Origin: Syncephalis fuscata S228
Taxonomy: Eukaryota > Fungi > Zoopagomycota
Direction of reading: 5' to 3'
NCBI GenBank assembly: GCA_025786725.1
Contig: JAHLTZ010000009.1
Coordinates: forward strand, 372,001-436,000
Length of the DNA: 64,000 nt
A program made the translations under genes and the position numbers. Under the pieces are notes generated by a model. It did not search any database, had not been told where the DNA came from, and saw only the letters and a program-made list of their open reading frames with translations. Below are positions 18,508-49,094 of this stretch, piece after piece; within the stretch, counting starts at the first letter, position 1, and each line of letters opens with the position of its first letter.

Positions 18508-19520
18508 ATATGGTGAATATCGAGTAAAAAAATACAGTGGTGATTGATAGAAATGCAAGAAAATCTGACAGCACCTTGATGTCTGTACAAAAATGATTAT
18601 TTGGAAAGTCGTCGATAGGAAACCTGTTAGTATATCACATGGACGTATAGTGATAGCGCGCCAATATGCATATTGGAAAATGGTTGATCATTGGCGACAC
18701 AAGGCGAAATTTTGGACTGAAATAGTTGTATACGTGTACAAGCCTTCGCTGTTTTATTTAGCAGTTTAAGTGCTGTGAATAAAATATGCATACTCAGCAG
18801 TATGTGTCTGCATAGCAGATTTAATGGTTTATTTCAAATGAAAAATGAAAGCACGCTGAACTGCCAAGTCTTTAGTAATGTTGGCCATATTAGCCATGCT
18901 GTTTAGTATTTGAACAATATGCTAGTGCTACACGTGTCAATAAAACGTCACACGAAATCATCATGCTAGATGTATGATCGGTCAAGGAATAAACAAGAAT
19001 TTTGGAGAGCACAATTGGTCATAAAAAGCGTACAGAAATACCATTAAAGCACTAGTTTTTTTCCATCTTCCAAAATGGCATTTCTAACCAAAAGTATCAG
19101 TACTATATTAGATTGAAATACCGTAATGATATAATGAGATGGTTGATTAACAGTAATTCATCACTTATTACAGCCGTTACTTTACAGCGTTATTAATTTA
19201 TACAGCTAATATTTTTTAAGTTTGTGTATATTAAAACATTCAGTTAATAATAAAGACAGCTTTTAATATTTACATGCTATTCAGTTAAATACGCGATAGT
19301 TTATAACAGAGAAAGTGACACTGACTCAATGTTTTGCTAATATGTGAGGCTGACACCGTTCCGCAAATAACCGGTTATTGCATGCAACTCCATGCTGTTC
19401 ACCTTTGGTCTTGCGTTGATGCTCACACATCATTCTAACCTGCCTATTTTGACCAGCCTCTTTATTATATATATATAAACTCTATAATCTTTGTATAGTC
19501 ATACCACCTAATACCATAGT

Positions 19521-20546
19521 ATGCCGCTGAAAGATAATTTGCAAGACAATGCCACAACTTGGTTCGGTATTCCATTAAATCCACTTGGCGGGATACCTGT
19601 ATATGATTTTGTCGCTGGGAAAGACGAAGACTACGAGCTGCCTAGATCAATGGTCCAGGCCCGACTAACAGGGCTTCAGCGTCAAATTGCCTGTTACATG
19701 ATTATGTCACTTATCTTTGTGCGTAATACGGTTGTAGCCATTAATGTACTTAAATGTCAGCCCAAAAGCTTTTCGGGATGGTGCTGCCTTATGGCGTCAT
19801 TATTTGGCATTTGTATGGGCATGATGGATTTAGTGGCTGTAATAATGACCAGCTTAAATTGCAGACAAATAGTTTGGTTTATTATTTTAGTTTATAATTG
19901 CTCGATTATGTTCAACACTATTATTTTGTTGCACAAAGCTTATCTGGCGCTACTCCGCCGCCGTTGGGTACTGTTTGTTGGCGCATTCTTCATAATATTA
20001 CAACTTTTATTCGCTTTTATTTCAGTGCAAAAGTCTCCGATAACTATAGAGGCATATAACGGCTGTGTAATAAACTACACAGTGCCTACGATAACCACAT
20101 GGATTGTTTCAGTATTGCCTGTTAATATGCTTTTATCAGGAATATTCAGTTACATTGCTTATAGGCAATACAGGCTATTTGGCTCAACAGCATGGAAGAA
20201 GCTAGCTGAGGATGGCATTCAAACCATGTGCGTAGTGATACTCTGTAACATACTATGTGGCATTGTCATTGTGTTTAAGCTATTTGGCAACTTTTCAGAG
20301 CTTTTCTTCATGATTGACTGGTAAGATAACTACATGTTGCAAAATCGTAACTAATCTGTTTTCAGGGTGGTCACATCAACAATATTGGCCAATCACTGCG
20401 ATTTTGTATGTAGAACAGTAAAGTCGCTTTCTACGGCATCTGGCGAATCTAAAAGCGTTGCTACTACGAATATGGATATAAAAGAGAACACGACAATATA
20501 TCCTAGTCATGCTTTTGACACTACCAACTACACATTGTCTTATTAG
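19521..20546 (+). CDS. 7TM GPCR-like family member 2
   Basis: Same motifs; single intron in the DW Trp codon; ends TNYTLSY*. Confidence 0.85.
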
Positions 20547-20858
20547 CAACAGCTTTTGTTTAATAAAGGCCTGAATGTTTGTGTGCACGGTTGTCACAGC
20601 CAATCAATTGAGTTGAGCTGCAATGTTCAACGCTTTGCTATCCGTGCCTCCTACTCTGCTTTTGCAAAGAATTAAATAGCGGTTTATAGCAACATGCATG
20701 CAACAGGTTTTTCCTGCATGTTTTTTGCCTTGTAAGGACTAGAAGGGTTGTTAAACCATATTGCTGTTTCATTTCGCTTACCACACTTGTTGCCACATAT
20801 ATACATACACAAATATATGTTTTATAACATTTAATCTAGTACTTTCTAACACGTCAAT

Positions 20859-21884
20859 ATGCTAGCCGATAAAACTTGGATGGAAAATACTACTAGTTTG
20901 TTGGGTATTCCATTGCATCCACTTGGTGAAATTTGTATATACGACTTTGCCAGTGGACAACAAGAGAACTACGAGCTATCCAGAGCAGAGGTCCAAGCTC
21001 GAGTAACAGGTCTTCATCGCCAAATTGTATCCTACTTGATTGTGTCGTTTATGTTTGTACCCAATATAACGAAAGCTATCAAAGTGCTCATGTGCCAACC
21101 GAAAAACCTTTCAGGATGGTGCTGTTTTATAACATCATTAATGGGTGCCAGTATTGGTGTAGTAACTGCATTAACTATGCTATTAAATCACATAAACTGC
21201 AGACATGCATGCTGGTGTCTTATCTTGTCTATTTGCATAGCTATGATGTTCAATAGTATTATTCTATTGCATAAGGCATATTTAGCATTGCTCCAACAGT
21301 ACTGGGTGCTGTTTATTGGTTCATTTTGCACGCTCTTGCAACTGTTGTTTATGCTTGCCGCTTTAAGGTTTATCCCAATTACAATAGAAGCGTATGGTGG
21401 TTGTATTGCCAACTATAGTCCAATTCTTGTATACACTTGGATTGCCGCTGCACTTCCTGTTAACGCATTTTTTTCATTTATATTCTGCTACGTGGCTTAC
21501 AATCAGTACAAGTCTTACGGCTCTAGTTCGTGGAAAAAGTTAACAGAAGAAGGAATTCAAGCCATTTGCTTGGTGACGCTATGCAATATAGTTTGTGGCA
21601 TTTTTATTGCATTTGAACTATTTGGAAAATTTTCAGAAATGTTTTTTGTTATTGACTGGTAAGTCAGTGGATATTGCTAAATTACAAGCTAACTATTAGC
21701 CAGGCTATTTACATCAACAGTGCTAGCCAACGACTGCGAAAGTAGATACAAAACAGCAAAAAAGCTTAAAGAAGCAAGTGATCGGTGTAAGGAGTGCAAT
21801 AATACGCAGATGGATATCAAAGAAACCATAACAACTTACCATGACCGTTTCCGTGGCACTACCAATTTTACATCATTTTATTAA
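20859..21884 (+). CDS. 7TM GPCR-like family member 3
   Basis: Same motifs and intron; ends TNFTSFY*. Confidence 0.85.
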
Positions 21885-22208
21885 TACTAAACATTCTTTA
21901 AACCAATTTAAATGCTAATCAACTTCAATAATCATAATAAACCATTTGAATTATTATGCAGTAATACCACAATTATAATGTCTGCATCAATAGCGTGTAT
22001 AGTACCACAAAATGATTGTAAACACTATCATGCGACAATACCAATAACCGGTTATAGCGTAAACCAAGATTTCGGCTTGTTTTGTCTTTGAGAATGTTAG
22101 TTGACCGGTTGGCCTCTAACATGTGTTTTCGCTATTTCTACTACTTGCTTTGTTGCGCTATAGACGATATTTCTATTAGTTATTTGCTTGTATTAGTACA
22201 ATAGCCAA

Positions 22209-23228
22209 ATGAATGAGCTGTCGAATGAGAATGTAACCAATTGGCTTGGTACTACGCGCGTTCCACTTGGTGAGATATCTATCTATGACTTTGTCAGTGG
22301 AAAGTATGAAGAACATGAGCTATCCAGGGCAGAGGTTCAAATTCGATTTACGGCTATACAGCGCCAAATTGCAGTGTACATAAGTTTATCAGCTATATTT
22401 ATGCACAATTTTTATGTAATAGTTAACATATTGCGATCCCAGCCTAAAAACATATCGGTATGGTGCTGTCTTTTTGTTGCTTTACTAGGCTCCGGTTATG
22501 TTATACCAATCTCGATGCTCGCGCTAGTAAATAGCATGAGCTGTCGACAAATATGCTGGTATGGCATAATAACTGTTTGCTTGTCCGCAATTTTCAATGG
22601 CATTATTTTACTACACAAGGCATATCTGGCGTCACTCCGACGACTTTGGGTGGCAGTTATTGGCATGATATTTGTGCTGTTGCAAGTAGGATTTATGGTT
22701 GTTGCGATTGTAATCACACCGGTTACTATAGATCCGCAGTATGCTTGCGCTGTCGAGTATAGCTCACTGATGATGTACGCCTGGATTGGAACAGTGCTAC
22801 CTGTTAATGTATTTTTTTCGGCCATTTTCAGCTACGTTACCTATACTCAATACAAAACGTTTGGTTCGGATGCATGGAGACGATTAGCCGAAGATGGCAT
22901 TCAAACCATGTGTTTGGTGCTGCTATGCAATGTCATATGCGGATGTTTTATTGCTTTCAGAGCCTTTGGAAGTGGCTCAGATATATTTTTTATTATCGAC
23001 TGGTAAGTCAGTAGTCATTGTTAAGCTGCAAACTAACTATTAAACAGGGTATTTACATCGACCATCTTGGTCAACCATTGCTCTAGCATATCTAAAGCAG
23101 TAAAGGCGTTTACTGAAGCAAGGAGCCGATCTAGAGAATACAGTAGTACGCAGCGCGATATAAATGAAACCATAACAACCTATCACGGTCACATTCCAGG
23201 TGTTACCAACTTTACATCATTTTACTAA
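22209..23228 (+). CDS. 7TM GPCR-like family member 4
   Basis: Same motifs and intron; ends TNFTSFY*. Confidence 0.85.
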
Positions 23229-23799
23229 TTATTGATCAATACAAAATAGCATAAGCAAGGATGTTTTTATAAACTAATAAAATGTTTAAATTACATTGCA
23301 CTTTATGACATACTATTGTAAACACGTGGTTTATCGTCATTATAAGTATGGATGTGCATGTAGTGTTTATTTAATGGGTCCTTCGCCTTTACTCGTCACG
23401 AGAAAACAACATCGTTTATTCAATATGGCTGTGTGTGTGGTACATGTGTGTATCCGATGCATTATACTATCGTCACAAACTGCTAACAAGTCAGCAGAAT
23501 ATTATAGCTAATTACCATCTATAGCTAAGCTTGCTCACTTGCCAGCAATTCCCTGTTTGTTCTGCGGCAGAAACGTAATACGCTTTAGTGTTGCCAGTAT
23601 GGCCGTTATCTAAAATTTCGTGCATCCTGAAATACCAGTATGGAATCACGCGACTAACCAGCCATGCAGCATCCACCTTTCTACCTTTTTGGCAACCTTG
23701 AACTTTTAGCTCATAATTTTACTTTGATATTTGTGTTTAATTGCTTATTGATTGTTTATTATATGGATATATCCACCAGCCACCTTATTAATATAACAA

Positions 23800-24817
23800 A
23801 TGCAAGAACTGGGAACAAATGCAACCACTTGGCTTGGTATCCGATTGGATCCACTTGGCGAGCTGTATATCTATGACTTTGTCAGTGGAAAGTTGGAAAA
23901 CTATGAGCTATCTAGAGAAACCGTTCAAGCTCGACTACTGGGTGTGCAGCAGCAAATTGCATACCATTTAATTGTATCTATTTTTTTTACACGCAATCTG
24001 TTTGTAGCGATCAAAGCGCTTCGATTTAGATTAAGCAATCTATCAGGATGGTGCTGTCTAACGGTATCTTCACTAGGCTTCGGGTTTCTCGTCTACACTG
24101 TATTGCTAGGAACGGTCTATGAAATGGCATGTAGGCCGTTAAGCTGGTACATTCTTTGTGCCATGAATCTTTCTAACGTTTTCAACACCATAATTTTATT
24201 GCACAAGGCATATCTGGCTCTGCTTCGTCCGTACTGGGTACTCATCAGTGGTTTTCTTTTTATAGCATTACAGCTCGGCTATCTGATTAGCACTATAATC
24301 ATCAGCCCATTCACTATAAAGGAATATATCGGTTGCGTATTTAATTATACAAAGGCCCAATCATATGTCTGGCTTGCAACAGTATTTCCTGTCAATACTT
24401 TCTTTTCGGCTATATTCAGCTACGTTGCTTATAAACAATACAGGAATTTTGGCTCAGATGCATGGAAACGACTGGCTAAAGATGGGATTCAGACAATGTG
24501 CTTGGTTATACTATGTAATCTAGTATGTGGCACGCTGATTATTTCTGAAGTTCTGAAGAAGTTTGCGGAAAATCTTTTTGTTTTTGATTGGTAAGTTGAA
24601 TGTTTGTCATCGTAATACAAGCTAATGTTCGTAAAGGGTTTTTACATCCACAATCTTGGTCAATCATTGTGAAAATGTGTCCAGGACAATCGAGTCATTC
24701 ACTGCAACAAATAATAGGTCCAAAGAACTCAATACAACGCAAATGGACATGAAAGAAACCATAACAACTTATCATGGCCGTATTCGTGGTGCTACGCATT
24801 TTACATCATTTTATTAA
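23800..24817 (+). CDS. 7TM GPCR-like family member 5
   Basis: Same motifs and intron; ends THFTSFY*. Confidence 0.85.
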
Positions 24818-25162
24818 TAACGACTTTCGTTTAATAAAAATTTAAGCAAATATGTTTTTACAGCATTAATAAACCATTTGATTAACTTGCTGTATTACTA
24901 TTATAAAGCTAGGCTAATTATTGCGTAGATCAGTTTGCTAAAAATTATCTGCATGCTCATGCTTGCAGTGCATATTAACAACCAGTTTTACTAGATATAT
25001 CTCTTCGCCTTGAATCATTACTAATCGTGCTACTGCCATTTTATCCATTTTTATCCACATTCGTACTTCCATGTTTACATTAATATCAATTAATTTATTA
25101 TATATATATATATAAATAGTATTTTTTCATTAGCTAATAATTTACCAATAGTACATCAAACA

Positions 25163-26178
25163 ATGTCCGATATAAAAGGAAACATGACCGTTTGGCTCGG
25201 TATTCCGCTAAATCCACTTGGCGAGATGCATATATACGACTTCATTAGCGGAAATCAAGAAGACCATGAGTTATCCAGAATGGAGGCTCAAGCTCGACTA
25301 ACAAGTATGCAGCGTCAGATTGCGGCATATATTATTATCTCATTGATATTTATGCGCAATTTTTCCGTAGCTATCAATACGCTTAAGTTTCAGCCTAAGA
25401 GTCTTTCAGTGTGGTGCAGTATATTTGTATCCTTACTAGGCGTTGGACTTTTTATATGTTCCTCATTATCGGGACTAGTAATTAACATAAACTGCAGACA
25501 GGCAAGTTGGTACGCCATGTCAGCTCTTTGCTTGTCAACAATTGCCAATGGCATTATTTTGTTGCACAAAGCATATCTAGCATTGCTTCGAAAGCGTTGG
25601 GTGGCAATTACTGGCATGATATTTGTGTTATTGCAAATAGGATTCATGGTTGTTGCTTTCAAGGCTGCGCCAGTTACCATAGAAGCCGAATTGGCTGTGT
25701 TGTCGAATATGGCAATTTATTGTCATATGCCTGGATCGGAACAGTGCTACCTGTCAACATATTTTTTTCAGCTGTATTTAGCCATGTTGCCTATAAACAA
25801 TACAAAACGTTTGGTTCGGATGCATGGAGACGATTAACTGAAGATGGCATTCAAACTATGTGTTTGGTAGTATTATGCAATGTCATATGCGGATGTTTTA
25901 TTGCTTTTAAACTTATTGGCAAAAACTCGGAAATATTTTTTATAATCGACTGGTAAGTTAATATTAACCGTTAAACTACAAACTAACTATTATACAGGGT
26001 GTTTACATCGACAATTTTAGTCAATCATTGCTTTGTTATATCTAAAACAGCAAAAGCATTCACTGAAGCAAAGAGCCAGTCTAAAGGAGGCAACAGTACG
26101 CGGCGCGATATAAATGAAACCATAACAACTTATCATGGTCACATTCCCGGTACTACAAACTTTACGTCATTTTATTAA
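25163..26178 (+). CDS. 7TM GPCR-like family member 6 (1-bp deletion at ~25689; assembly error or young pseudogene)
   Basis: GCCGAATTGG versus GCCGACATTGG in the otherwise identical tract of member 7; ORFs 25163-25837 and 25507-25956 join if one C is restored. Confidence 0.75.
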
Positions 26179-26489
26179 TCATGGGTTTACGTAAAAATAA
26201 CATAAACAAATGTGTTTTCATAAAACAAATATAATGTTTTGCCTATCTTACTATACACCATTGTAGATTAATGCATTGAAGGTCATTTGCATGCGTATGC
26301 TTGCAGTCCATGTCAATAACCAGTTTTACTGAGTATACATTTTCGCCTTGAATCATCGTTGATCTTACTACTGCCATATTATTGTTTTATCTGCCGTTTG
26401 CATATTCATATTTACATTTATATCTATTAGCTTGTTATATGTATATATAGAGCTTTTATTAGTTAATTACACAAATAATATAGCAAACA

Positions 26490-27508
26490 ATGTTCAATGC
26501 AGAAAAGAACACAACCACCTGGCTCGGTATTCCGCTAGATCCACTTGGTGAAATACCAATATATGATTTTATTAGCGGAAACAAGAAGGCCATGAAATAT
26601 CCAGAAGAGACACTCAATTTCGATTAGTAGGCTTTCATAGTCAAGTTGTAGCATATATTGTCATATCAACACTATTTATGCGCAATCTTTCTGTAGCTAT
26701 CAATACGCTTAAGTCTCAGCCTAAAAATTTATCAATATGGTGTAGTACACTTGTATCATTGCTAGGCATTGGACTTTTTATAATTACCGTATTACTGGGA
26801 TTTATAATTACCATAAACTGTAGGCATATGTGCTGGTTTGCCATTACAATTCTTTGTTTGTCAACAATTGCCAATGGCATTATTTTGTTGCACAAAGCAT
26901 ATCTAGCATTGCTTCGAAAGCGTTGGGTGGCAATTACTGGCATGATATTTGTGTTATTGCAAATAGGATTCATGGTTGTTGCTTTCAAGGCTGCGCCAGT
27001 TACCATAGAAGCCGACATTGGCTGTGTTGTCGAATATGGCAATTTATTGTCATATGCCTGGATCGGAACAGTGCTACCTGTCAACATATTTTTTTCAGCT
27101 GTATTTAGCCATGTTGCCTATAAACAATACAAAACGTTTGGTTCGGATGCCTGGAAAAAACTGGCCGAAGGTGGCATCCAGGCTATGTGTTTGGTGGTAT
27201 TATGCAATGTCATATGTGGAACTTTTATTTTTTTTAAATTTCCTAGTAAACGATCGGAAATGTTTTTTATTATTGACTGGTAAGTCGGTATTTATTATCA
27301 AGCTATAAACTAACCAGCAACTAGGGCGTTTACATCAACAATTCTGGTCAACCATTGTGCCGACATATCTAAAGTAGCCAAAGCACTCACTGAAGCAAAA
27401 AGTCGGCCTGAAAAGCATAATGGTACTCGGGTGGACATAAGAACATCTATGACAACATACCGCGACTATATTCATGGCGACACCACCAACTTTACATCTT
27501 TGTTTTAA
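26490..27508 (+). CDS. 7TM GPCR-like family member 7 (1-bp deletion in A-run at ~26580)
   Basis: MFNAEKNTTTWLGIPLDPLGEIPIYDFISG joins ORF 26678-27283 if one A is added; ends TNFTSLF*. Confidence 0.75.
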
Positions 27509-27803
27509 TAAAAACTGGTCAATAACAATTAAATCTAATATGGCATATTTTAATCGAATCAATAAACCATTTGAATTATTGTTTGCACCAATGATATGTC
27601 GCGATAACACTGCACAAGACCCCAAAAAGCAATGATTTGATCATGCGTATAACCGGTTTATCACGCGTGGTCTCTTTGTCTTGCTTTGCCTTTGGCTACT
27701 ACCTAATCAGCTTCGCAATTAACTACCTAGCCTTTGTTAGACATGCCTAGGCTGCGTATATTATTAATTCACAATAGTATTTTTTGCACTTTTTAACTAA
27801 ACA

Positions 27804-28830
27804 ATGGATGTTAAATGGGTAGCATTTGCTACTAGATTAATAAATACTTCTTTATATACCTTGGCAAAGTATACATATATAGTGTTGTTGGTGGACAAAA
27901 GAGGTGCAATAACTATCTAGAGAAGCTCCTCAAGCCTGATTAACGGACTTTCAGCGTCGAATTGCATGCCATGTATTATTATTGTTGATTTTACCCGTAA
28001 TTTATCTGTAGCTATTAAAACTCTTAGATCACAGTTTAAACGTTTATCGAAATGGTGCTGTTTATTTACAGCGGTGCTAGGTGTTGCAATTGCTGTAAAT
28101 ATTGTATTGGTAGCATTTGTTAGAAAGGTTAATTGCAGACAAGCAGCCGGGATCGACCTTATAAAACCTTGTCTATCCATTATTGTTAATAGTTTTACAT
28201 TGTTGCATAAAGTATATCTAACGCTAATTCGACGATACTGGGCAATGATCTGTGGAATTTTATTTACAATATTGGAAGTTGCGGCTATGTTAAACTCTTT
28301 ATGGATAGTGAAAATTGCTACAGAAGCGTACAGTGGTTGCGTTGTTTGTTACAGTCCTTTATCATATACACATGGATTGCTGCTATTGCACCAATTATTG
28401 CATTTTTCAGCGATATTTACGTATATGTCCTACCAATAATATAAGATATTTGGCTCAAGAACATGAAAAAATCTAGTTGAAAATGGAATGCAAGTCATGT
28501 GCATAGTAATACGATGCAGCACAGTATGTGGCGTTGCTATTGTATCCAAGCTATTTGGCAACTTTTCGCAGTTTTTCGCAGTTTTTCTTCATGGCTGACT
28601 GGCAAGATAACTACATGTTGCAAAATTAAAACTAATTTAATTTTTAGGGTGGTTACATCAACCGTACTGATCAACCATTGTGCTACAGAATCTAAAACCG
28701 CACGGCTGTTCATCAACCCAAGTGAATTTACTAGTGAGTTTAACAGTGTATACAGATAAATGTAAAAGAAACAATAGCAGCTTATCGTGAGCACATTCTT
28801 AATATTACTAATTTTACAATATGCCGCTAA
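27804..28830 (+). pseudogene. 7TM GPCR-like family member 8, decayed
   Basis: Recognisable WCCL/NCR/LHKVY/GC motifs, but several frameshifts, TAA at 28437, TGA in place of the conserved Trp, a short tandem duplication at ~28563-28584 and a GC in place of the GT donor. Confidence 0.85.
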
Positions 28831-29104
28831 ATGATAATATCTATTTTATAGTTTAATAAATTAGTAATGTCAGATGATATACCAAAAATAGCTCCTAGCA
28901 GTATTTTGCCTGTCCTAAATTGCCATGCGTTTTTTCAGCGATAAAGAAGCGCAACCGGACCAACAACCGGTTTTATTCCATGTGCAGTTCTCGGTCTCGC
29001 CTCGCTTTCCATCCTTTTATTCAACTCCATACTATATTCTTACCTTCAGTATTATTCGCAGTTAGACGTGTAAATTTTTTTACCTTTATTAAACAACAAA
29101 CACC

Positions 29105-30163
29105 ATGGTATATGATTCGGCTAAATTCGATGATGATTCATGGAAGGTCAATGCTACTAAATGGCATGGTGTTCCGTTATATCCGGCCGGCGAAATACCA
29201 TTAGTCGATTTTTTTAATGGAAAACAAGAAAACTATTCGTTATCCCACAGCGCCATTCAAGCGCGGATGGCAGTCGTATATCCACAGATGACGCTTGCTT
29301 TGTCTGTATCTCTTATTTTTATGCGCAACTTAAGACGCTCTGTAAAGTTGCTAATAGCACAACCACATAATCTATCGGGATGGTGCTGCCTCGTTCCATC
29401 CATTTGTGGCGCAAGTCTTTTTATCTGCATCTCTATGCTAATGCTGTCCAATGAAATGAACTGCAGGAAAGCTGTTTGGTATATTGCGTTTATGATCAGC
29501 ATTTCGCTTGTATTCAACACTGCAGTTGTGCTCCAGCGCGCTTACCTAGCATTATGCCAAAAATTTTGGATAGCAGTAGTTGGTGTGCTATTTTCATTGC
29601 CCCAACTAGCCTTTATATATATTGTAGTGTGGTATTCTCCGGTCTCTATAGAGCCAAACGATGGCTGTGTCATCCATTATCCCGATTTTCTGGCATGGTT
29701 CTGGGCCGGCGCATCCATCCCCATCAATGCTTTTTTAACAGCAGTATTCAGTTACATCACATATAATCAATACAATCTCTACGGCTCTGATGCCTGGAAA
29801 CGACTGGCACGCGATGGCATTCAGGCCATGGTTTTAGTTATATCTTGCAACGTGGTTTGTACGCTGATTCTTTTATCCAAAGTAGCCGGATCTTTTACGG
29901 AAATGTTTTTTGTAATTGATTGGTACGTATAGTTTTTTTATAGCACAAATATAATAACTAACATACTGTTCAGGCTGATTACGTCTATCGTTCTAGTCAA
30001 TCATAGTAGCAGTATACGTAAAGCGGCCAAGTCAGTTGCAGCACCTAGAAGTCAAAAAGATAAACCAGCAAGCGCCGACATTGATTTGGGAGCGACAATA
30101 ACCACCGCCTATAGACCTTTTACCACCGTTAACAGTGCTAGCAAATATTCACGTCTTCATTAA
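29105..30163 (+). CDS. 7TM GPCR-like family member 9
   Basis: Same motifs (LQRAY, YGSDAWKRLARDGIQ) and intron; divergent C-tail ending YSRLH*. Confidence 0.85.
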
Positions 30164-30283
30164 CATTTTTCTAATACCAATACAATTAATAACATCTTGC
30201 GCAAATAAATAAATAAAAATACATTCTATTTTTATACAATAGTTCTATTTTATTTTTCTACAGCTCTATTTGTCACCGTCGCT

Positions 30284-32578
<2,295 letters not shown>

Positions 32579-36630: not shown

Positions 36631-37609
36631 TTACGGTATAATTGGTGCTGGTTCTGTTGGTATTTCACCTTCTTCTAATAATGATGTATCATTATTGTTA
36701 TTATTATCGCGAGCCTGTTCTAGTTGTAAAAGGCGATTGCTTAATGTGCACATTTGAGCAAATACATCACTCGTAATACATTGATCGACTGCCTCTAATC
36801 CTCCTTCCAATTCTCCTGGCGATAAGTAGCGTACAGTAAGGCCTAATAGACTATCGCGTCGTTCGACATCATTCCATTGTGGTATCGATAGCAGTGTTAT
36901 CCAATCACGAATAAAACTATCGCACGCTTTATAAGCATGATCAGGCAGTAGATGTGTACGAACAAGCACCAATAGTGCAGAAAGCGTTTGTTCGTATGTA
37001 TCTGGATCATCAATAGGTAGTCTACTTGTAGATTCGGCGGAGAGTGTTGATAATGAGCCATGGCGATGAGCAGGTGGTTTTGGGTAATCATAGAGCAAAG
37101 ATTCTGCTGTATCAATGCTTGATAATGGCTGTTCCATATGTGTTGTCATATTAGCTGGATGATTAAATGGTACTGGATGTGCACCAACACGATGAAGACC
37201 AAACTTAACTTGGGATTGATGTGTCGATACAGGCGAGTTATTTTGTTCTTTACTTATATCTACATCATTAGACGATAGATGAGGATGTTGTTGATGGGTA
37301 GTAGTCTGTTGTGGCATATCCACCGTACTATCTGGTGTAGTCGCTTCTGTATCGCTTGAATCTACACTAGAATTCACTGATAATGGTAGTGCATTTGCTG
37401 TTACCGCAGAGGGTGGCGCTTCATGTATAGCTCGACTGCCCATTTCCCTGCTAATCTTTTAATACAGTTTATTAAATAATATCAAACACATACTTTGGAT
37501 CAATGTATCCATTTAATGTAGGAAGCGAACCTTTCTCACCAGGTGCACAAGGCAGTTCGCCATTATGCATTGAAAAATCACGACTATAATTCATATTGCT
37601 AAACACCAT
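36631..37609 (-). CDS. Hypothetical protein (disordered N-half, helical C-terminal domain)
   Basis: 270-aa ORF 36631-37443 plus a probable short upstream exon from ATG 37609; no family recognised. Confidence 0.55.
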
Positions 37610-37809
37610 GAAAGAATACGAAAAAGCAAAGCTGAATACCACTGAAACTCATCGTTGACGCCTATCTTTGTTTGCTAAACATGACTGAAACCTTAATGTC
37701 TGACTTTATTTGGTAAAAAATAGTCATTCCATTTAGTATGCATTTACGCATATACATACTGGAATAGTATAATCTATTTAAAGATGCTCACAAGCTAGCA
37801 TCAATGCAT

Positions 37810-38917
37810 TTACGGGCTGGTCTTATCCATATGGACCACCACCGTGTCGGAACGTGTCTCTGCTTCAATCTCTTCGGCCGTCTCTTCCTCTACTGTCTTT
37901 CGTGCTCCTTTGGTTTTTTGTTTACTTGCTTCAGTGTCATGATCGTCGTCATCGTCTTCTTCATCGGCAATGTCAAATATTGGTTCACCAACAGGTAAAT
38001 TGCCGCCTAATCCCGTTTCTCGTTGACGACCACCACCACCACCTACTTGACCTAGTTGAATGTGATCACCACGACCACTGGCACCGCCACCTACTACACG
38101 GAAGCCATGACCTTCTTCATCTTCGTCATCATCAAGAGCAAAGGCATCTTCAGCGTCCTGTTCGTTGCTAGGCAGCTCTTGTAATCCGTATCGTTGATTC
38201 TCCGAGGTTGGTCGCCAGAAGAAGGCAATGAGCGTGAATACAACAAAGTACTCGGTATTCAGCCACCCATCCAGTATAAACCATTGGTAGTGCCAACGAC
38301 GAGCCACCCAGTCTGGATCATTTTGATGCGTTACTGATGCCGTGTTGACTACAAAGAATAGACCCAGTAGAATAACTGAAAAAATTAATATACGCCACAA
38401 ACGAGTGTACATTGCCAGTTTAACATGCTGTTTACGCGTTTCTAATAGCTGGGTGGTGGCGGTAAGCCCATTGAGAATGTACTGTACAGAGTTAAGAATT
38501 TTTTTAAATAATATACGCTAGTTTCATCATCTCTTAAAAAGGATATCCAAAAGTAGAATATGGTCATAGTAATTGATAGTGGTAGAACAAATACAATAAC
38601 CAATAGACCGGCTGTCTCCGGGGTAGTTAGCATAGTACCAGATGCATATAATGCGCCGCATACGAAATGAACATAGGTTAGTAGTTTACACCGGAACATA
38701 GCACCGCCCAATGAAGGCCTGTAATATCAATTGTAGACGATAATAGTTGGTTTAACCATAAATATATCAGTTAAATAAACAAATAATACTAAATACTTAC
38801 CGAACTACACCATAACCAAGAGAAACGATCAATAGTAGGAAGAATGACAGACTGTTACGCCAGCATTAAGTATAGCCAGTATAATCATTAGAGCAAGCGC
38901 TAATAGCCATATCGATC

Positions 38918-38957
<40 letters not shown>

Positions 38958-40049
38958 GCAGTAATTGATCAATGGTAACTTACAAGGCTCGCCTCGACTA
39001 TTATAATCCTCCCAAAATCCGTAATGCATTGCCATTTCTACTGTCAAGAAAAACATAACACCACCAATATAGTTCTATAATAAAGTGTGATTAAACAATA
39101 ATTATATTATATTGATTATTGATAACGCCATTTACCTGTACCGGTAAAATATCTGACCAGTTATAATATGATTTTGTTGCCCAAGCAATAAACATAATAA
39201 GATATGTAAGGGAAAATACACCGTAAAACTAGATATTATACATATTAACATTACAATATTAATAGACTATGTATGCTGGTCACTTACAATCAACTTTGGG
39301 TACTCGGATGGAGGTGCTTTACCAAATGGACTCTCCCAAAATACATGAGCATCAAAGTTTTCGAGTGAGACGGTATTAACACAATACCATCCAGTACGTG
39401 TGATATTGTACCGAATGTCATATGGCTCAGACTGGTTTGTACGAACATGTACAGATTCCGTATATATCATAGGCATTTCTCCGGCGATAGGTGTACTGAG
39501 AAATTGGCCACGTTGTGTCTCGTTACAAATCTTGAAATCAATTGCTTCATCGTCGCAAATATACGTTTTGGGGCGCTATGGATGGCCAGTCATTATGTCG
39601 TCAACATACAATTATTAAATGCTTACTTTGGTGTCATTTTTTGGAAAAACGCCCAAGGCTGCCTCATCTCTCCAATCGTAGATAACGATCGAAATATCGG
39701 CGTTGTTGGCTGGCTTTTCCGGAAATTGGACTAATGACGTTGATTAATAGATGAACAGATTAATCAACTCTGACCAGCTAGCACTACCATTAATACTTAC
39801 CATGAACATAGGAGTCACGCGATCCAGCAACGTCACCCTTTGCGTACATGCCTTGACAGAGCATAGTGGTGCCGGTACTGCCGCCCTAAATAACGATCAC
39901 AAAGCTAGTTAGCTGGCCGATTAAGCGCGTAGTTGTCCAGCTCATCCTACCAGATGCTGATGGAACGCCATAACATTGCTGTTGGCCAGTGTCAATAGGC
40001 CCAGCCAGCAGCCGAATGACCACGTCTTTTGTCGCCAACTTGGCCACAT
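37810..40049 (-). CDS. PTM1: Ptm1/TMEM87 (Lung_7-TM_R, GOST family) membrane protein
   Basis: Signal peptide, TGWYCV, LNAGRNSLSFFLLLIVSLGYGVVRP, KQHVKLAMYTRLW, FWRPTSENQRY; many introns including U12-type 38479-38546. Confidence 0.9.
38479..38546 (-). other. U12-type (minor spliceosome) AT-AC intron
   Basis: 5' site ATATCCTTT, branch TTCTTAAC (38498-38491), 3' TAC; removal gives in-frame FYFW|ILNGLTATTQLLETRKQHVKLAMY. Confidence 0.9.
38921..38958. repeat. (AAT)n microsatellite in a PTM1 intron
   Basis: Directly visible. Confidence 0.9.
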
Positions 40050-40922
40050 TGCTGTTTATAAACTATATTGCTTGCTGAATGCCAAGAACAATAGAGAGGA
40101 AAATGCTTTGATAATAAAACTTCTTTTCCAGCTAGTAGCGCTACTACTATATATACGTCTTAGTTAGACTGGCTTGACAAAAAAGTAAAAAGTTAATGAA
40201 CACGTAGGTGCATTGAAGGAAAGCAGCAACCAGTGGCGATAGTTGTATGTTCAAAGTAACGAGGCGACGGGAGAACTTACGTTGGTCACGATGATTGGAT
40301 GGCAGATCTATATTATGTTACATTGTGATATAGCCGTTGCCGGAGACAAACCCAATGCGACCATTGCATAGTTAATTCTACGTTCTTTTATTTTATTTAT
40401 GATTTACATTGAAGATTTAAATGTAAATTATGATTCTAAAAGTATTTATTTATTTATTATGTTCTATATACTTATTAATATAAGATAAAAAACCATTGAC
40501 CAAATGATATGCTATCTATGAATAGTGAGTATTGTTGTACTGCTCGTCCCCCTTTTAAACACAGGCCAATATATGGCACAGTCATTGTAAAGTTTGATAG
40601 GAAATAACAATGTTTTGTTTTTATGCACAATCTAGTATAATAAAAATACATCAATCTAATGCCAACAAATAAAGTAATAAGATTTGTTTTATATTACTCA
40701 ATAATGGATGTTTATTGAGTGATGTGGCACATATTGAAAGAGAAATTAGAAGGAATAAAGTTTGGTCCAAAATACAAGAATCAGCGGCATCACTACTGAG
40801 CAATAATGGTGGGGATGGTAGTAACGAGTAGATGAAGAGGAGGAAAAAGGACGTGCGTGCTGCTCGACGCCATGGTCGGTCGTCGTGTTACTACTCAATT
40901 GAGTGCTACGCACGTCTCTTTC

Positions 40923-41785
40923 CTAGCAGTCAGGCGTGAATTTGATCCAGTCAAAGTAGGCATACTGAGGAAAGTTGGCTGAACTACTCTTGCCGGCCCA
41001 GTCGCTATAGTCGCTGCCGTCCCAGAGTGTGACTTTGAAGCGCATCGGCTGGTTAGGAAATAGTTCGGCCTCCGATTTCCTTAGTGTGCGAATCACTTGA
41101 CCATCAAATAGCCATCTGAAAAGGGGTAGACATTCGTCGAAAGTTAAATAGTGTCTCTATAGCTAAATAGATTACTTACGAGACTTCATCCTTTTGATAG
41201 TCAATACCATAGACGTGATACTGTTGTGATGTGTCGCTTCCCGTATCGTGGTATACCGGCACTACTTGACCGCGCTGTCCATTGACCCAGTAGAACGACT
41301 GGAACCGGTCTGGATCTTTGCCGACAAATTCAATATCAACCTCGTCTTGGCTACCATCAGGGCCTACGCCACTGCGAAGCTATTCAAAGTAAGTAACACT
41401 GATTTGCAAGCAGCCAAGTAAATCGATGGCTTACATAAAGCGACGTTACAATACCGCTAGTTCGGCCAGTCTTTATTCTTGCCTCAACCTTGCCGGTCCT
41501 GTACTCGAACGTCGGTCCGATGGACGGGCCACATGTCGATGTCACTTTAAGAACTAGATTGCCATTGTCAAGGAATGCATTTTCCTGACAGAAGTTGTTG
41601 TCGAATGATTCTTTGGTAAGCTCGGCGAGGTCTTTTTCTTGGTCAAAATTATACGTAATGGGATTGCAATCCGACTGGGATAACACCGGCTTTCCGAGTG
41701 GTGCCGGCGACAGATTCAATGCCGCATTGGCCAGCATGATTGCTGGCAATAACACCATCATAATGATGGGCACCATGCATAACAT
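40923..41785 (-). CDS. Secreted GH16 glycoside hydrolase/transglycosylase (Crh1/Utr2-like catalytic domain)
   Basis: Signal peptide; GKVEARIKT, GIVTSL, catalytic QDEVDIEFVGKD (ExDxE), YFDWIKF; two introns; no Ser/Thr stalk or GPI tail. Confidence 0.88.
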
Positions 41786-43176
41786 TGACTATTTGTGCAG
41801 ATTAGTAATCGTTTTCTCTTTCCATCCAATGCACACTGACCATTTTAACAATAAAACACTACAAATGACGATACACTAATGTGAAATAGTAATCATTAAT
41901 GCATGTTTTAACATTATTTATATTGTTACAGACTAACGATTTGTAGTTGCCATCTTAAACTTATAAATAAGACTAATATAATCTATAAAACACAAATACA
42001 GCATCTTATGAAATAACATTTAAAATTGGAAGTGTGACTTTCTTGAAACAGGTATGTGTCAGTATGGTGGTGTGTTGCGTATACGTACGTTACCGCAAAG
42101 TATTTGGGGCTATATTGCAGATGGGCATTTACCAATAATTGATACGTTTTACGACACTTTGGATTGTTTGGTTGTTAGGCCAAATTTTGTACGGTTAATC
42201 ACATACATAATCAATACCATCCCTAGTTAATTGATTTCACACAAAATACATTAAATATATGATTGCAATTAATAGCCAGTAGAACATATTGTACCTGTTT
42301 AATTATAAAGCAACCGGTTGGGTATCAGCAATAGTGGTTCTAATGCTGTTTAGCAGAAATTTGGCATCAATACCCATGTGAAGAGCAGCGTGTAGTCTGC
42401 ATTTTCCAGATTTCATCCATATGGTCTCAATGGCAATTTGTACAAATCCAAGCCTGTTTTGCCAAGACGTTGGTGTATTAGCTAGGTTCTAGCTGGTTAA
42501 ACAGTTATTTTTAGTTTTAAATAAATTAAATGTTACTATGTGCACAAAGTAAAATGTGATAGAGCGGTTAGTTTCCTTTTTCCTCACATGATTCAATGAT
42601 GGTGGCGGAATTTAAAAAAACATGCGCTGCTGCAGTTAAGAATGCTTCTAAATAATAGCGCTACTATTGCTTGCCTTTGGCGTGAATTCATCGTGCTGGT
42701 GGGTCTAGCCCCTTTTCCAACGCTGACTGGCCTATCGTTAATAGTAATTACAGCAATAGCTGTGTAGCGTTCACTGTACTTTGTTATACTAATTAAACAG
42801 CTGTATAGGTTTTTATTACAATATTGGCGTATCTTTAATTCCGCCGTATACCTAGTATAAATAAAAATCACTAGACAGTCTTATAAATTGCAGTTTATCG
42901 CAAAGAAAGGCAACCAGCTCCTTTGCTGGTGATACGCCATTTATGCAAAAAACATGTTTACCATCATATGATGCAAAGGACCAGTTTTCACTTATAAAAA
43001 CGCCGTGATTTATCCGGCTACATCTTCAACTCGAGTCTCTTCAATTCGTCCTGCCTATTCAATTTAGTTTAGAAAGCTTTTCTCTTACACTTGCTCCACA
43101 TTAATTTATTTGTAATTATTCTCAATTTAATATCTACATTATACATACATTCATAATACTCAAAACACTTACTAAA

Positions 43177-44198
43177 ATGATTAATAATTGGAGACAGAAT
43201 GCCACGACAATTATGGGCATTAAGCTGCATCCGCTCGGTGAAGTGCCAATATTCAGTTATATATCTGGGATGACGGAGGATTACATGCCAGAACAAAGTG
43301 TGATCCGTGGTCGACTGTTTGGCTTTTATCTTCAAATCGTTTCCAATGTAATATTAAGCGTGATTTTTACTCGCAATCTACATCTTGCTATCAAAACAAT
43401 TGCAACTCGATCGCGTAACTTTGCCCTATGGTGCTGCGTTATATCATCTGCTTTGGGCATAGTGCCAGGCGTGATGATTATGAAGGCCTCTTTAGGTGAT
43501 GGCGTGAATTGCAGAACAGTGGGATGGTATGATATATACACCATATGTATTTCGACCATTTTTTGCCATTTAATTGTGCTGCAGCGTGCCTATTTTGCAT
43601 TACGCCAGCAGTATTGGATTCTAGTTATTGGAATTGCGATATTATTGCCACAAATTGGCTTTGGTGTTGTTGGAGTAGGCTATTCTTACATAATAATAAG
43701 CGAGGATAGTGGCTGCACCATTCACTATCCCAATTCGCTGCCGTGGCTCTGGTTTGGTGGGTCCATACCAATCAATTTGTTTTTTTCAGGAATTTTCAGC
43801 CATGTCGCATATAAGCAATATCGCACCTTTGGTTCGGATGCATGGCGACGACTAGCACGCGACGGCATCCAGGCCATGTGCTCGGTCACACTCTGCAATA
43901 TAGTGTGTGGGCTAGGCATTTTCTTCAAGATTGGAGGCGATTTTTCGCAAACATTTTTTGTAGTTGACTGGTAAGCAGGCTAGCAGTGCTAACTATTACA
44001 GCTAATTCATTATTTAGGGTGATTGCGTCGACAATTCTCGTGAATCATTGCAGCAGCATACGCCAATCTAACACCAGTGCTATTGCCTCAAAAAGCAAGT
44101 CCAAACGCTTGCAAACCTCCCGTATTGATATAAGAGAAACTATAACAACCTATCAAGGGCGGTATATAGCCAATACAGAATTTACGTCAATTTACTAA
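43177..44198 (+). CDS. 7TM GPCR-like family member 10
   Basis: Same motifs and intron; ends TEFTSIY*. Confidence 0.85.
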
Positions 44199-44749
44199 GT
44201 ACTAATTTTTGTGTACACATTTGGAAACGGAAATAAAACAATTTCATCTTCTGCAACGTTTTTTTAGAGTCCTACGCAACGTGACAGTACATTTGAAGTT
44301 CGATACTGCTTATATTAAGTAATCGTTGTTGACAATTTTATTCTAAATAGGAATAAAGATACCAAATTTAGTGTTTTTATTTGCAAGTAGTTGCAAACAT
44401 TGGCAAATTAGTATTAGCTGATTCTGGTATTTTAGTTTAGATTTTTGCCTACCATTTACGGTAATGCGTGAAAAAGTGCATATAAACAATGTCTCACCGG
44501 CCTTGTCACAAATCATGATTTAAGAAAGGATTTGCGCGCGCTGTACAGTGTAACTGTAGCGTGCATTGACTTATTGTAATGCGATTAACCGGTTATATTG
44601 CATGACATGCGTTTCATGCGTCCAATCCAACATGAGAATTTACGAAATATATTCTTCTAAGCTACCAAAGTTCTTCGCCGCACGCAAAAAAAAATCTTTC
44701 TCAACTAATTTATGACTTTGTTTAAAATCAACTAAACACAATAGTAAAT

Positions 44750-45757
44750 ATGAACGATGAGTGGAAAAAGAATGCTACTACTTGGATCGGTATTCCATTG
44801 CATCCGTCAGGCGAAATAAGTCTGTTTGACTATGTCAACGGCAAGCAAGATAATTATGAGCTATCTAAAGCTACGATTCGAGCTCGCCTAATGGGAATTC
44901 AGTTTCAGTTCATGTTCAGCATCATATCGGGACCTTTATTCATCTACAACTTAATAAGCGTTATTAAAACAAGAAAAACACGGCCCTATAGCGTATCCAG
45001 CTACTGTTGCCTCATCTCGTCACTCTTAGGTATAACCTATAGTATAGTAAGCGTGATTGGAGTGGTGGCCGACAAACTAAACTGTAGGCAAATGGTTTGG
45101 TATCTTGCGTTTGTTGTAAGCTTTTCTATGTTTTTCAACAGCATCACCATACTTCACAGGACGCATCGGGCACTGCTTTGCCAAAAATGGGTGGCAGTTT
45201 GGGGCACCATTTTTACACTACCGCAATTTGGATTTCTAGTCATTATATGTCTGTTCTCTTATATTACGATAGAGCAATACATGGGCTGTACCGTTCATTA
45301 CCCTTTTTTTCTTTCCTGGTATTGGCTTGGAACCATGCTTCCCATTAACATGTTTTTCTCTGCTATATTCAGTGCAGTGGCCTATAGGCAGTACAAGACC
45401 TACGGTTCCGACGCTTGGAAACGCTTGGCCCGCAATGGCATCCAGACTATGTGCCTAGTAGTATTGTGCAATTTAATATGTGGTTTCATCGTTATTTTTG
45501 AACTAGGAAGATATGTTTCACAAATGTTTTTTATTGCCAATTGGTAAGCGGTCCATTTAAATTTGAAATAGCTCTGACTTTTCTTTAGGTGTCTCACTAC
45601 AACTATACTTGTAAATGATCTTACAAAAAAGTATGCAAATAATGGCTCGACTACAGAAGAGAAAAACGCACCGAATGTATATAGCGTTGATGTTGATATT
45701 AATGAAATTACGGCAGGCTATTCCAGTCGATTTGTAGCCATTACCAATTACATCTAA
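44750..45757 (+). CDS. 7TM GPCR-like family member 11
   Basis: Same motifs (YCCL, LHRTH, ANW variants) and intron. Confidence 0.85.
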
Positions 45758-46096
45758 TGCTAAGATGGTAACACGAATACTAATAAACTATTACACATGC
45801 GTGCAATATTATAATTTCTAGTAACCAGTGTATTAATACTTAGTTTTAAATAGCACATCTGGATCGGGAGTCATGATTCAGCAGTTCTATTATTAATATC
45901 AAAAGACTCAGCCAGACCGTTAACGCTGATAAAACCGGTTATGTCTTATCACATGCTGCTACACGACAGTTCGCCTTGGGCCCTTTGGTTTCCAATTCTT
46001 ATACTTAATTATTTTGTTGATAGCTTTTTCATATACAATACTTATACGCATTACTTCGTGTTTTATATACTATTTGACAAAGCATAACGATAAAAA

Positions 46097-47117
46097 ATGA
46101 ACAACAACATAAGAAACAGCTCTATAGTCAATCTTGGAAATGCGCTACATATGCTTAAAGATGTATACATATACGACTTTATTAGCGGAAAGCAAGAGAA
46201 TTATGAGCTATCTAGAAAAGAAGCGCAAGATCGACTAATGGGACTACAAAAGCAAATGGCAATTCACTTTATCTTATCTATTTTATTCATCCGTAATTCA
46301 TTTGTAATTACTAAAACACTTCGAATTCATCCTAACAATATTTCAGGATGGTGTTGTTTAGTAGTATCGCTTTTAGGAATTGCATTCAACTTATATACCG
46401 TATGCATAGTATTAGTTGATAATATGAGTTGTAGACCATTAATTTGGTATATTACATGTGCCATTAATATTTCCAATATTTCCAATACAATTATTCTATT
46501 GCACAAGGCATATCTGGCCCTACTTCGTCAGTATTGGGTGATCATCATTGGTTTACTATTTATAGCACTACAATTCGCCTTTATGCTTAATGCTGTACTA
46601 ACTACAAAAGTTACTATGGAAATATATTACGGTTGTGTTTTTAACTATACGAAAGGTCTATCTTACATCTATCTCGCGTCAATAGTGCCTGTCAACGCAG
46701 TTTTCTCAGCTATATTCAGCTATGTCGTCTATAAGCAATACAAGAAGTTCGGCTCGGATGCATGGAAACGATTAGCCAAGGATGGGATTCAAACAATGTG
46801 CTTAGTAGTGCTATGTAATATAGCATGTTGCGCACTGATTGTTTCTAAGGTTCTAAACCACGATTCTGAGCTTTTCTTTGTTGTTGATTGGTAGGTTGGA
46901 TAGTTGTCATAATGATCCCAACTAATGTTTTTAAAGGGTTTTTACATCCACGATTTTGGTTAATCATTATGCAAAAACAACCAAGGCAGTTGATTCAATG
47001 GTCAACACGAGTAATAGGCCCAGAGATCCTAATAGTATGCAGATGGATATAAAAGCGACCATAACAACTTATCAAGGCCGTATGCATGGCACTACCAATT
47101 TTACATCACTGTTTTAA
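46097..47117 (+). CDS. 7TM GPCR-like family member 12
   Basis: Same motifs and intron; ends TNFTSLF*. Confidence 0.85.
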
Positions 47118-47743
47118 TAACATGCAATAATAATTTAAGCAAATGTTTATTTTCATAACATCAATAAACCATTTCAATTGATTTGTTAAGTTACTATTAT
47201 AAATTCAGCCTAGTTATTATGTGGATGCTCTGTTAAAACTATCTACATGTTCATTCTTGTAGCCAATACCAATAACCAGTTTTACTAAATATATATTTTT
47301 GTCTTGAATCATTACTAATTATGCCTCTGTCATTTTATCTGTTTTATCCACATTCGTACTTCCATGTTCATATTAATTGAGTCGATTTTACTTAGTAAAG
47401 TATTGCCAGATAGCCTTGTCAATGAAAGTTAAGAAAACATTACATATAAGCGTAATGTTATAATTTTTAGTAAATATTATATTAAGACTTGATTTTTAAA
47501 TAAAACATTTGAATTGATGACTATGACTCAGTTGTCTTTTTGTTAACATCAATGCTTTGATCAAATTGTCAACGCCAAAAACCGGTTATATTCCATCACA
47601 TGCTAAATGGCAGCAATTCGCCTTGGGCCTTTTGTTTCCACTTCTCATGTTTAATTACTGTGCTGATATTTCTTGTATATACAATAGTTCTACATATCTA
47701 GGTTGCATTTTTATATACTATTTGACAAAGCATAACGATAAAA

Positions 47744-48764
47744 ATGGACAATAACGCAGGGAATAACTCTATAGTCAATCTTGGCATGCTGCTAGATATG
47801 CGCAAAGATGTATATGTATACGACTTTATTAGCGGAAAGCAAGAGAACTATGAACTATCTAAAAAAGAGGTGCAAGCTCGATTAACGGGAATGCAAAGAC
47901 AGATTGGGTCTCACATTGTCCTATCTAGCCTATTTATACGTAATCTATATATGATTATTAAAACACTCCGAATCCATCCCAACAGTCTTTCAGGATGGTG
48001 CTGTTTGTTGGTATCACTGCTGGGGATTGTACTCAACCTGTATACCGTATGCTTGGGATTAGCTGATGATATTAGCTGCAGGCCATTAGTTTTGTATATT
48101 ACCTGCGCCATTAGTCTTTCCAACATTTTCAACACCATAATCTTATTGCACAAAGCATATTTGGCTCTACTTCGTCCGTATTGGATAGCCATCAGTGGTT
48201 TACTATTTATAGCACTACAGTTTGCCGCTATGATTGATGTTGTACTAACTACAAAAGTTACTATGGAGGAGTATTATGGCTGCGTCTTCAATTATGATAA
48301 CCTTGTGCCTTACATCTATCTCGCGTCAATAGTGCCTGTCAACGCATTTTTCTCAGCTATATTCAGCTATGTCGTCTATAAGCAATACAAGACGTTTGGC
48401 TCAGATGCGTGGAAACGATTAGCCAAGGATGGAATTCAGGCAATGTGCTTAGTAGTACTATGCAATATAGTATGTACCGTGTTGATTATTTTTAGAGTTC
48501 TAAAAACATTTTCAGATCTTTTCTTTATTATTGATTGGTAGGTTGAGTAGTTGTCATAATGATACAAACTAATGTTTGTACAGGGTTTTTACATCCACGA
48601 TTTTGGTTAATCATTGTGCAAAAATGACCAAAACAGTTGATTTAATGGTCAACACGAGCAATAAATCCAGAGATCCTAATAGTATGCAGATGGATATAAA
48701 AGCGACCATAACAACTTATCAAGGCCGCATCCGCGGCACTACTAATCTTACATCACTGTTTTGA
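47744..48764 (+). CDS. 7TM GPCR-like family member 13
   Basis: Close paralog of member 12; ends TNLTSLF*. Confidence 0.85.
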
Positions 48765-49094
48765 TGATCAGTGTTCTTTAAAAAGTATCGCTAACTATTT
48801 TAGTACACTGTACGTTACATTAATAAACTAATTTAATTGGTTTGTTTTGATATCGCTATTACAAATTATATCACTATAGCTTAAAAAACGGATTTATAAG
48901 CTATTTATCGATAGCAGCGCTTGATCACATATTAACCGGTTTTAATGGATATAAGTAGCCTGCCTTTGCCCGCCTTGGAGACTGCAGCGTCTAACGCTTA
49001 ATTTAGTATCTATATTCTCAGTATTTTGACGTTACTTTTTATACGTGTATACTTATTTAATACTCATTATCTTAACCTTTTTACTATTCTAAAA

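Follow-up and report, generated by a model that had tools for sequence, protein, structure and literature searches.

Grainyhead (GRH) factors, which bind their response element, AACCGGTT, as homodimers, have roles in epithelial barriers in animals and in cell-wall remodelling in Neurospora, while the LSF/CP2-type site of the same superfamily is CNRG-N5/6-CNRG and is bound by a tetramer. Large families of chemoreceptor genes have common promoter elements, such as the O/E and homeodomain sites found in vertebrate odorant-receptor promoters. To our knowledge, gene regulation in the Zoopagomycota is almost entirely unexplored, and Syncephalis, as far as we know, is an obligate mycoparasite that is not genetically manipulable. 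Here we analyze a short palindrome, AACCGGTT and its central-base variants, that lies upstream of an array of seven-transmembrane (7TM) genes resembling G-protein-coupled receptor (GPCR) genes in Syncephalis fuscata. The stretch of DNA analyzed, the window, is 64,000 nucleotides long (G000:C361:372001-436000) and comes from a genome assembly of 29.4 Mb in 371 contigs.

The closest described systems are the human GRHL1 DNA-binding domain, the structure of which has been determined with DNA (PMC5829564; PDB 5mpf), and Neurospora crassa GRHL/csp-2, which is the fungal precedent (PMC3348937). Ming et al. found that both the first C and second G are the most conserved bases of the Grhl element AACCGGTT, that Arg427 and the Gly387 carbonyl contact this G, that swapping these two conserved bases abolishes binding, and that changes at the central dinucleotide cost only 3- to 6-fold in dissociation constant (PMC5829564). 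Paré et al. found that the single CP2-superfamily protein of Neurospora binds to the GRH consensus but not to the LSF site; AACCGGTT and AACAGGTT are listed upstream of GRHL-dependent Neurospora genes, a set to which GH16 genes belong (PMC3348937).

A palindrome at a constant distance before the receptor genes

Fourteen copies of one gene family (m0 to m13) lie between 17.7 and 50.1 kb of the window. They form two tandem blocks, 17698-30163 and 43177-50112, with a mevalonate-diphosphate decarboxylase gene and other genes between them. The palindrome AACCGGTT occurs 9 times in the window, compared with 0.55 +/- 0.74 occurrences expected from dinucleotide shuffles (0 of 100 shuffles reach 9), and 13 of the 14 copies have the motif or a central-base variant 121 to 200 bp before the homologous ATG. 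An earlier note on this DNA had listed eight of the AACCGGTT positions (19369, 22046, 27651, 28965, 44587, 45933, 47580, and 48934), all of which are exact, and had omitted the ninth, at 42312; the variants that it gave, AACAGGTT at 20702, AACCAGTT at 24980 and 26318, and GACCAGTT at 42979, are also where it placed them. The distance of 140 to 200 bp that it proposed holds for the intact copies (-140 to -198) but not for m6 and m7 if their listed open reading frame (ORF) starts are used (-360 and -315). When homologous starts are inferred from tblastn offsets, these two distances become approximately -168 and -144. The single weakly matching member is indeed present and is the copy at 23800 (m4), in which the best match is TACTGGTA at -167. 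In a comparison of 12 plus-strand array sites anchored on the motif, ungapped pairwise identity of the +/-40-bp flanks is 0.30, which is the random level, compared with 0.91 for the motif itself, and the mean information per column is 0.27 bits in the flanks and 1.61 bits in the motif. The spacers are thus as unalignable as had been claimed.

The element is not confined to this array. Searches with exon 1 as the query gave at least 144 exon-1 matches among 363 candidates in the S. fuscata genome, and we examined a sample of 77 intact copies from many contigs, the proteins of which have a median pairwise identity of 37%. At -320 to -100, 37 of the 77 copies have the untrained core AACYKGTT/AACMRGTT, compared with 2.56 +/- 1.6 (maximum, 9) in shuffles. 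Its density in this zone is 2.24 per kb, versus 0.018 per kb in coding sequence, and its positions form a sharp peak, with 22 of 51 matches in the -200 to -150 bin. A symmetric position weight matrix (PWM) with a threshold of 10 bits or more detects a site in 53 of the 77 copies; the corresponding counts are 2.4 for shuffles, 2 for coding DNA, and 12 for the more distal zone. However, the palindrome was the seed of this matrix and the sequences scored were also its training set, so the figures from the untrained pattern and the shuffles are safer. An unseeded k-mer comparison of -300 to -80 with -500 to -280 returns AACCGG, ACCGGT, AACCGGT, and AAACCGGT at the top. The family-wide consensus is AAACCGGTTT, with the profile A A A C [C/T] [G/T] G T T T, a median distance of 180 bp before the ATG, and flanking columns of no more than 0.25 bit versus 0.7 to 2.3 bits in the core. 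Copies that carry the motif belong to 28 of 40 clusters at 60% protein identity, and 972 pairs of carriers share less than 40% protein identity. Among unrelated control promoters, 1 of 12 ORFs has a match, a set too small to stand alone; the controls on which we rely are the shuffles, the coding-sequence density, and the genome-wide count given below.

We also examined 67 kb from other species, comprising loci of S. plumigaleata and S. pseudoplumigaleata (L084, L085, L086, L087, and L089) and a metagenome contig (L088). L084 is the syntenic locus in S. plumigaleata (GH16, three receptors, MVD, and PTM1) and L085 is the syntenic locus in S. pseudoplumigaleata (4E-BP, GH16, and receptors), which has 56% GC versus 37% in S. 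fuscata. Ten of the 12 receptor genes from other species have a PWM match of at least 10 bits at -126 to -270. Seen from the side of the matches, 10 of the 14 in these 67 kb fall inside receptor promoters (-320 to -100), which make up 3.9% of the sequence (binomial P = 8e-12), and a broken receptor copy in L084 also has a match at about -225. The earlier description of the array as one regulon therefore captures an element common to receptor promoters but draws its boundary too narrowly, since the element occurs on many contigs, in at least 53 of the 77 copies sampled, and in three Syncephalis species. As a separate observation, AACCGGTT, TACCGGAT, and AACCTGTT are clustered upstream of an isolated receptor gene of S. 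plumigaleata (L086:5470-5510), approximately 500 to 530 bp before the annotated ATG. This is farther than usual, and the annotated start of this gene may be wrong.

One public sequencing run contains this DNA. In its contigs, the GT..AG introns of m10 (45 nt) and m13 (46 nt) are missing, which identifies the run as RNA, since the introns have been spliced out. Of the four spacers examined, three have no RNA-contig cover at the motif, and in these three it resumes in the depth bin of about 200 bp that holds the ATG, that is, no more than approximately 100 bp before the ATG. TATA-like runs are found 80 to 180 bp downstream of the motif (e.g., 19468-19490). Based on the RNA cover and the TATA-like runs, the element appears to lie about 100 to 150 bp upstream of the transcript start, which is the place of an upstream activating or repressing site, although contigs cannot fix a transcript start and this placement is indicative only.

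Taken as a whole, the palindrome is almost certainly a selected cis-regulatory promoter element of the receptor family. A short shared sequence among tandem duplicates could in principle be a nonfunctional leftover of duplication or gene conversion, held in common by ancestry without selection, and the retention of the motif in the damaged copies m5, m6, and m7 is what such a leftover would look like. However, the flanks have decayed to the random level around an intact motif, the same distance is kept in paralogues on other contigs that include the 972 divergent pairs, and the motif persists in two other species, one of which has undergone the shift in base composition. Flank decay and cross-species retention rule this explanation out, and we assign it next to no probability; the palindrome has been selectively maintained across paralogues and species. 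A further alternative, which we consider very unlikely, is that no sequence-specific activator or repressor is involved and the palindrome works as a core-promoter or nucleosome-positioning element or through CpG methylation of its central CCGG. The fixed distance from the ATG, the short spacers, and a consensus with a CpG in CCGG are compatible with this, but the central CG is the least conserved part of the motif, with CT, TG, AG, and CA variants all common, so CpG methylation cannot be the selected feature and is rejected on the base-by-base profile. Moreover, the motif is approximately 100 bp or more upstream of the start of RNA cover and upstream of the TATA-like runs, a distance too great for an initiator or a core element.

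Base profile of the palindrome and a candidate GRH-like factor

The information content of the family-wide motif peaks at the first C (C3; 2.04 bits) and the second G (G6; 2.34 bits), and the center is variable (position 4, C.63, T.24, and A.11; position 5, G.63 and T.36). Both arms of the dyad are conserved, and the base before AAC is A in 81 to 89% of sites and C or T in less than 15%. The earlier note had assigned the motif to the Grainyhead/CP2 consensus. By sequence and base profile it is the GRH-type single palindrome, whereas the LSF/CP2-type arrangement CNRG-N6-CNRG is absent; a second CNRG at +/-10 to 11 bp from the core occurs in just 1 to 2 of 53 sites, and we rejected the bipartite site. 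Two other assignments were also rejected. A Myb site (YAACNG) needs a pyrimidine where this motif has the predominant A, and a Zn2Cys6 factor needs CGG triplets, which neither of the common variants AACAGGTT and AACCTGTT contains.

A search for a CP2-domain gene, which the earlier note had proposed, finds exactly one locus in the S. fuscata genome, G000:C350:279945-280619 (L001; E = 2e-40), with PF04516 at 141.6 to 141.9 bits. The reading frames of this candidate factor encode the CP2 DNA-binding domain followed by a C-terminal dimerization domain, PF25416 GRHL1_C (53.9 bits; cutoff, 27), and its matches in the PDB place GRHL2 (1.9e-19) and GRHL1 (8.6e-16) ahead of CP2 (3.2e-12). The alignment keeps both 'KGVKG' (Lys386, Gly387, and Lys389) and 'DKGAERK' (Arg427 and Lys428).

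Judged from these sequence comparisons, the GRH-like CP2 protein probably reads the palindrome, in which case the element would be the response element of a GRH-like regulon. The mechanism that we propose is that A-A-A-C-[C/T]-[G/T]-G-T-T-T serves as a functional upstream promoter element of the Syncephalis 7TM genes and that it is most likely read by the only Grainyhead-like CP2-superfamily factor encoded in this genome (L001), acting as a homodimer. One half-site would be engaged by each DNA-binding domain via the arginine conserved in the 'DKGAERK' helix, with the two subunits kept together by the C-terminal GRHL1-type domain. The whole receptor repertoire would then receive one shared transcriptional input, which could be either activating or repressing.

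Several results weigh against such a general, GRH-read element. Besides the training of the PWM on the sequences that it scored, 24 of the 77 sampled copies, about a third, are without a 10-bit site. Genome-wide, there are 310 AACCGGTT sites in 29.4 Mb, compared with approximately 350 expected from base composition; this is close to chance, so the excess is specific to receptor promoters. Among the first 75 perfect AAACCGGTTW sites listed genome-wide, only about 5 are near scored family members; most of the listed sites are away from the scored family, and the motif alone therefore does not define it. In the m12-m13 spacer, a single RNA contig (48698-49884) runs from the 3' end of m12 through the motif into m13, which could reflect read-through, an upstream start, or an assembly join. 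Three family loci of Thamnocephalis sphaerospora have no proximal motif, only CACCGGTT at approximately -203 in L091, so we claim conservation within Syncephalis only. With respect to the factor, the Syncephalis protein has Lys at the position equivalent to Arg430, which makes the flank-A contact, and the upstream region of the GRH-like gene itself has no strong site; the best site in L001 has just 8.7 bits, and we rejected autoregulation on this basis. Finally, 34 of the 53 family sites have TGCA or ATGCA(T) no more than 14 nt away from the palindrome, versus 6.9% per 14-nt window elsewhere in the same spacers. This word is on the distal side in 24 cases and on the proximal side in 13, at a variable offset (e.g., window 19377-19400 and 44560-44615), and it is also found beside the motif in other Syncephalis species (L084:12655-12700 and L085:9225-9250). 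TGCA is not part of any GRH site that we know to have been described. Its enrichment suggests that a cofactor or a different factor may be involved, and TGCA may itself be a cofactor site.

These last points are the ones that lend some weight to a different explanation, in which a functional element has some other reader, one factor or a pair of them, whether a lineage-specific dimeric protein or one that also reads TGCA, and the GRH match is coincidental. A palindrome of 8 to 10 bp can be common to unrelated factors. Nevertheless, the base profile, with its dominant first C and second G, tolerant center, and A before AAC, is the published GRH profile, the Myb, Zn2Cys6, and LSF-type readings are disfavored by the same site profile, and the genome encodes a GRH-like factor that keeps the Arg427 and Gly387 contacts and has a dimerization domain. 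We therefore consider a coincidental match unlikely, if far from negligible, and retain the GRH-like factor as the probable reader.

Receptor genes and individual sites

The genes downstream of the palindrome form a two-exon, lineage-specific family of GPCR-like 7TM proteins. An intact copy consists of an exon 1 of approximately 265 amino acids (aa), a phase-2 intron of 45 to 51 nt, and an exon 2 of approximately 60 aa; exon joins were computed locally only to place introns. The full-length protein that we folded is the database protein P0001. Its AlphaFold model (predicted local distance difference test score [pLDDT], 78; predicted template modeling score [pTM], 0.75) contains seven long helices, with a beta-hairpin located between helix 4 and helix 5. 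With this model, every top Foldseek match in the PDB is a GPCR, with E values from 1.5e-4 and modest template modeling (TM) scores of 0.4 to 0.53. In Pfam, no family reaches the cutoff with the receptor exon or with P0001, and look-alikes in the ESM Atlas are only unnamed zoopagomycete or chytrid 7TM clusters. The UniProt name of one S. pseudoplumigaleata member cites a family-1 GPCR profile. Based on the seven helices and the best structural matches, which are GPCRs only, 'GPCR-like 7TM receptor' is a fair label for these modeled proteins, with the function as receptor a putative one. T. sphaerospora, which belongs to another mycoparasitic genus of the Zoopagales, also has members of this 7TM family, with longer proteins of 352 to 437 aa (L090, L091, and L092).

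In the first block, m0 is on the minus strand (exon 1, 17698..18507; ATG 18507) and divergent from m1, and its site, AACAGGTT at 18621..18628 on the minus strand, is 121 bp upstream of the ATG, with a PWM score of 12.2 bits. The m1 gene (19521..20546, plus strand) has exon 1 at 19521-20320, a 45-nt intron, and exon 2 to the stop; its 326-aa protein is 100% identical to P0001 (S. fuscata BDF19DRAFT_437017), and AACCGGTT at 19369..19376 is at -152 from its ATG (sites with this symmetric sequence are given without strand). Upstream of m2 (ATG 20859), AACAGGTT is at 20702..20709 on the plus strand (-157), and upstream of m3 (ATG 22209), AACCGGTT is at 22046..22053 (-163), with a second, weaker GACCGGTT at 22103. 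The sole copy without a good motif, m4, occupies 23800..24817 on the plus strand. Within the 14-copy array, m5, m6, and m7 are damaged. The frameshifted m5 (ATG 25163) has AACCAGTT at 24980..24987 on the plus strand (-183), m6 (tblastn 26579-27280, one in-frame TAG) is preceded by AACCAGTT at 26318..26325 on the plus strand, and the pseudogene m7 (27990-28577, two stops) is preceded by AACCGGTT at 27651..27658. All three retain the motif at the usual distance despite the frameshift and stops (window 24980-28577), and they may be recent pseudogenes or assembly errors. The block ends with m8 (ATG 29105), for which AACCGGTT is at 28965..28972 (-140).

In the second block, m9 (ATG 43177) has AACATGTT at 42951 (-226) and GACCAGTT at 42979 (-198), which together span 42951..42986 on the plus strand. 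The next two genes each have a AACCGGTT site that is without RNA-contig cover, at 44587..44594 for m10 (ATG 44750; -163) and at 45933..45940 for m11 (ATG 46097; -164). The m10 gene is on the plus strand at 44750..45757, and its 45-nt GT..AG intron is absent from the RNA contig, as expected of a spliced transcript. AACCGGTT at 47580..47587 is at -164 from the m12 ATG at 47744, also without RNA-contig cover, and AACCGGTT at 48934..48941 is at -161 from the m13 ATG at 49095, in the spacer through which the RNA contig runs. The 46-nt intron of m13 (49095..50112, plus strand) is likewise spliced out of the RNA contig. The m11-m12 spacer (47118-47743) is approximately twice as long as usual and contains two copies of the motif, the AACCGGTT at 47580 and an extra AACCAGTT at 47274..47281 on the plus strand, an arrangement that fits an orphan promoter left after the loss of a copy.

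Two further features of the spacers are of interest. The ninth AACCGGTT (42312..42319) is in the divergent spacer between the minus-strand GH16 (Crh-like) gene (ATG 41785) and m9. This spacer (41785-43177) has four PWM matches that include 42312, with others at positions including 42047 and 42451, and the syntenic GH16-receptor spacers of the two other species also have the motif, 650 to 740 bp from the GH16 ATG (L084:1612-2751 and L085:7063-7928). In addition, a second short conserved word, (C)GCCTTG, is found approximately 45 to 60 nt after the palindrome in m2, m5, m6, m7, m11, m12, and m13 (e.g., 45985-45992 and 47632-47640). In these array copies, it sits between the palindrome and the TATA-like run, and across the family its enrichment is only mild (12 of 53 at +20 to +80).

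Comparison with described systems and meaning for Syncephalis

Compared with the GRH/GRHL response element, the Syncephalis motif has the same palindrome, AACCGGTT, the same dominance of the first C and second G, the same tolerant center, and the form of a single promoter-proximal dyad; in Neurospora, gel1 has AACCGGTT approximately 130 bp upstream of its transcription start site, which is likewise promoter-proximal. As in GRH systems, there is a single GRH-type CP2-superfamily gene, with a dimerization domain and with Arg427 and Gly387 conserved. The differences are that the candidate targets are more than 140 lineage-specific GPCR-like genes rather than cell-wall or epidermal-barrier genes, that the organism is a zoopagomycete mycoparasite, that Lys replaces Arg430, that TGCA accompanies the motif, and that binding of the factor to the Syncephalis motif is a prediction. 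The likeness to LSF/CP2 sites is limited to the CCGG core, which equals one CNRG, and to a factor of the same superfamily; no second CNRG is present, and the Syncephalis protein, with its GRHL1_C domain, is nearer to GRHL1/2 than to CP2. With odorant-receptor promoters, the Syncephalis family shares the arrangement of one short conserved element at a fixed distance before most members of a large, fast-diverging 7TM family, with spacers that are otherwise unalignable. In contrast to those promoters, the factor family is different and singular receptor choice is not indicated, with neighboring receptor copies all present, transcribed and spliced, in one bulk RNA sample.

Our literature search found no paper on Syncephalis receptors or on this motif. 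The motif and the factor family are already known; what is new to the searched literature is the target set, the lineage, and the scale. We suggest, tentatively and with rather less confidence than we place in the identity of the reader, that a Grainyhead-like factor may have been recruited in Syncephalis as the common switch of the whole repertoire of more than 140 GPCR-like genes, that host sensing may thus be turned on as one GRH regulon, and that the site in the GH16 spacer may tie this regulon to the ancestral GRH cell-wall program. A cis-element common to most members of the largest receptor-like family of Syncephalis, together with a named candidate factor, provides a testable hypothesis for how the sensory repertoire of this parasite is switched on. 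If it is true, this would be the second fungal GRH regulon, following that of csp-2 in Neurospora, and the first from an early-diverging lineage of fungi, and it would add to the evidence that the DNA specificity of GRH has been fixed since the opisthokont ancestor while the set of target genes has been rewired.

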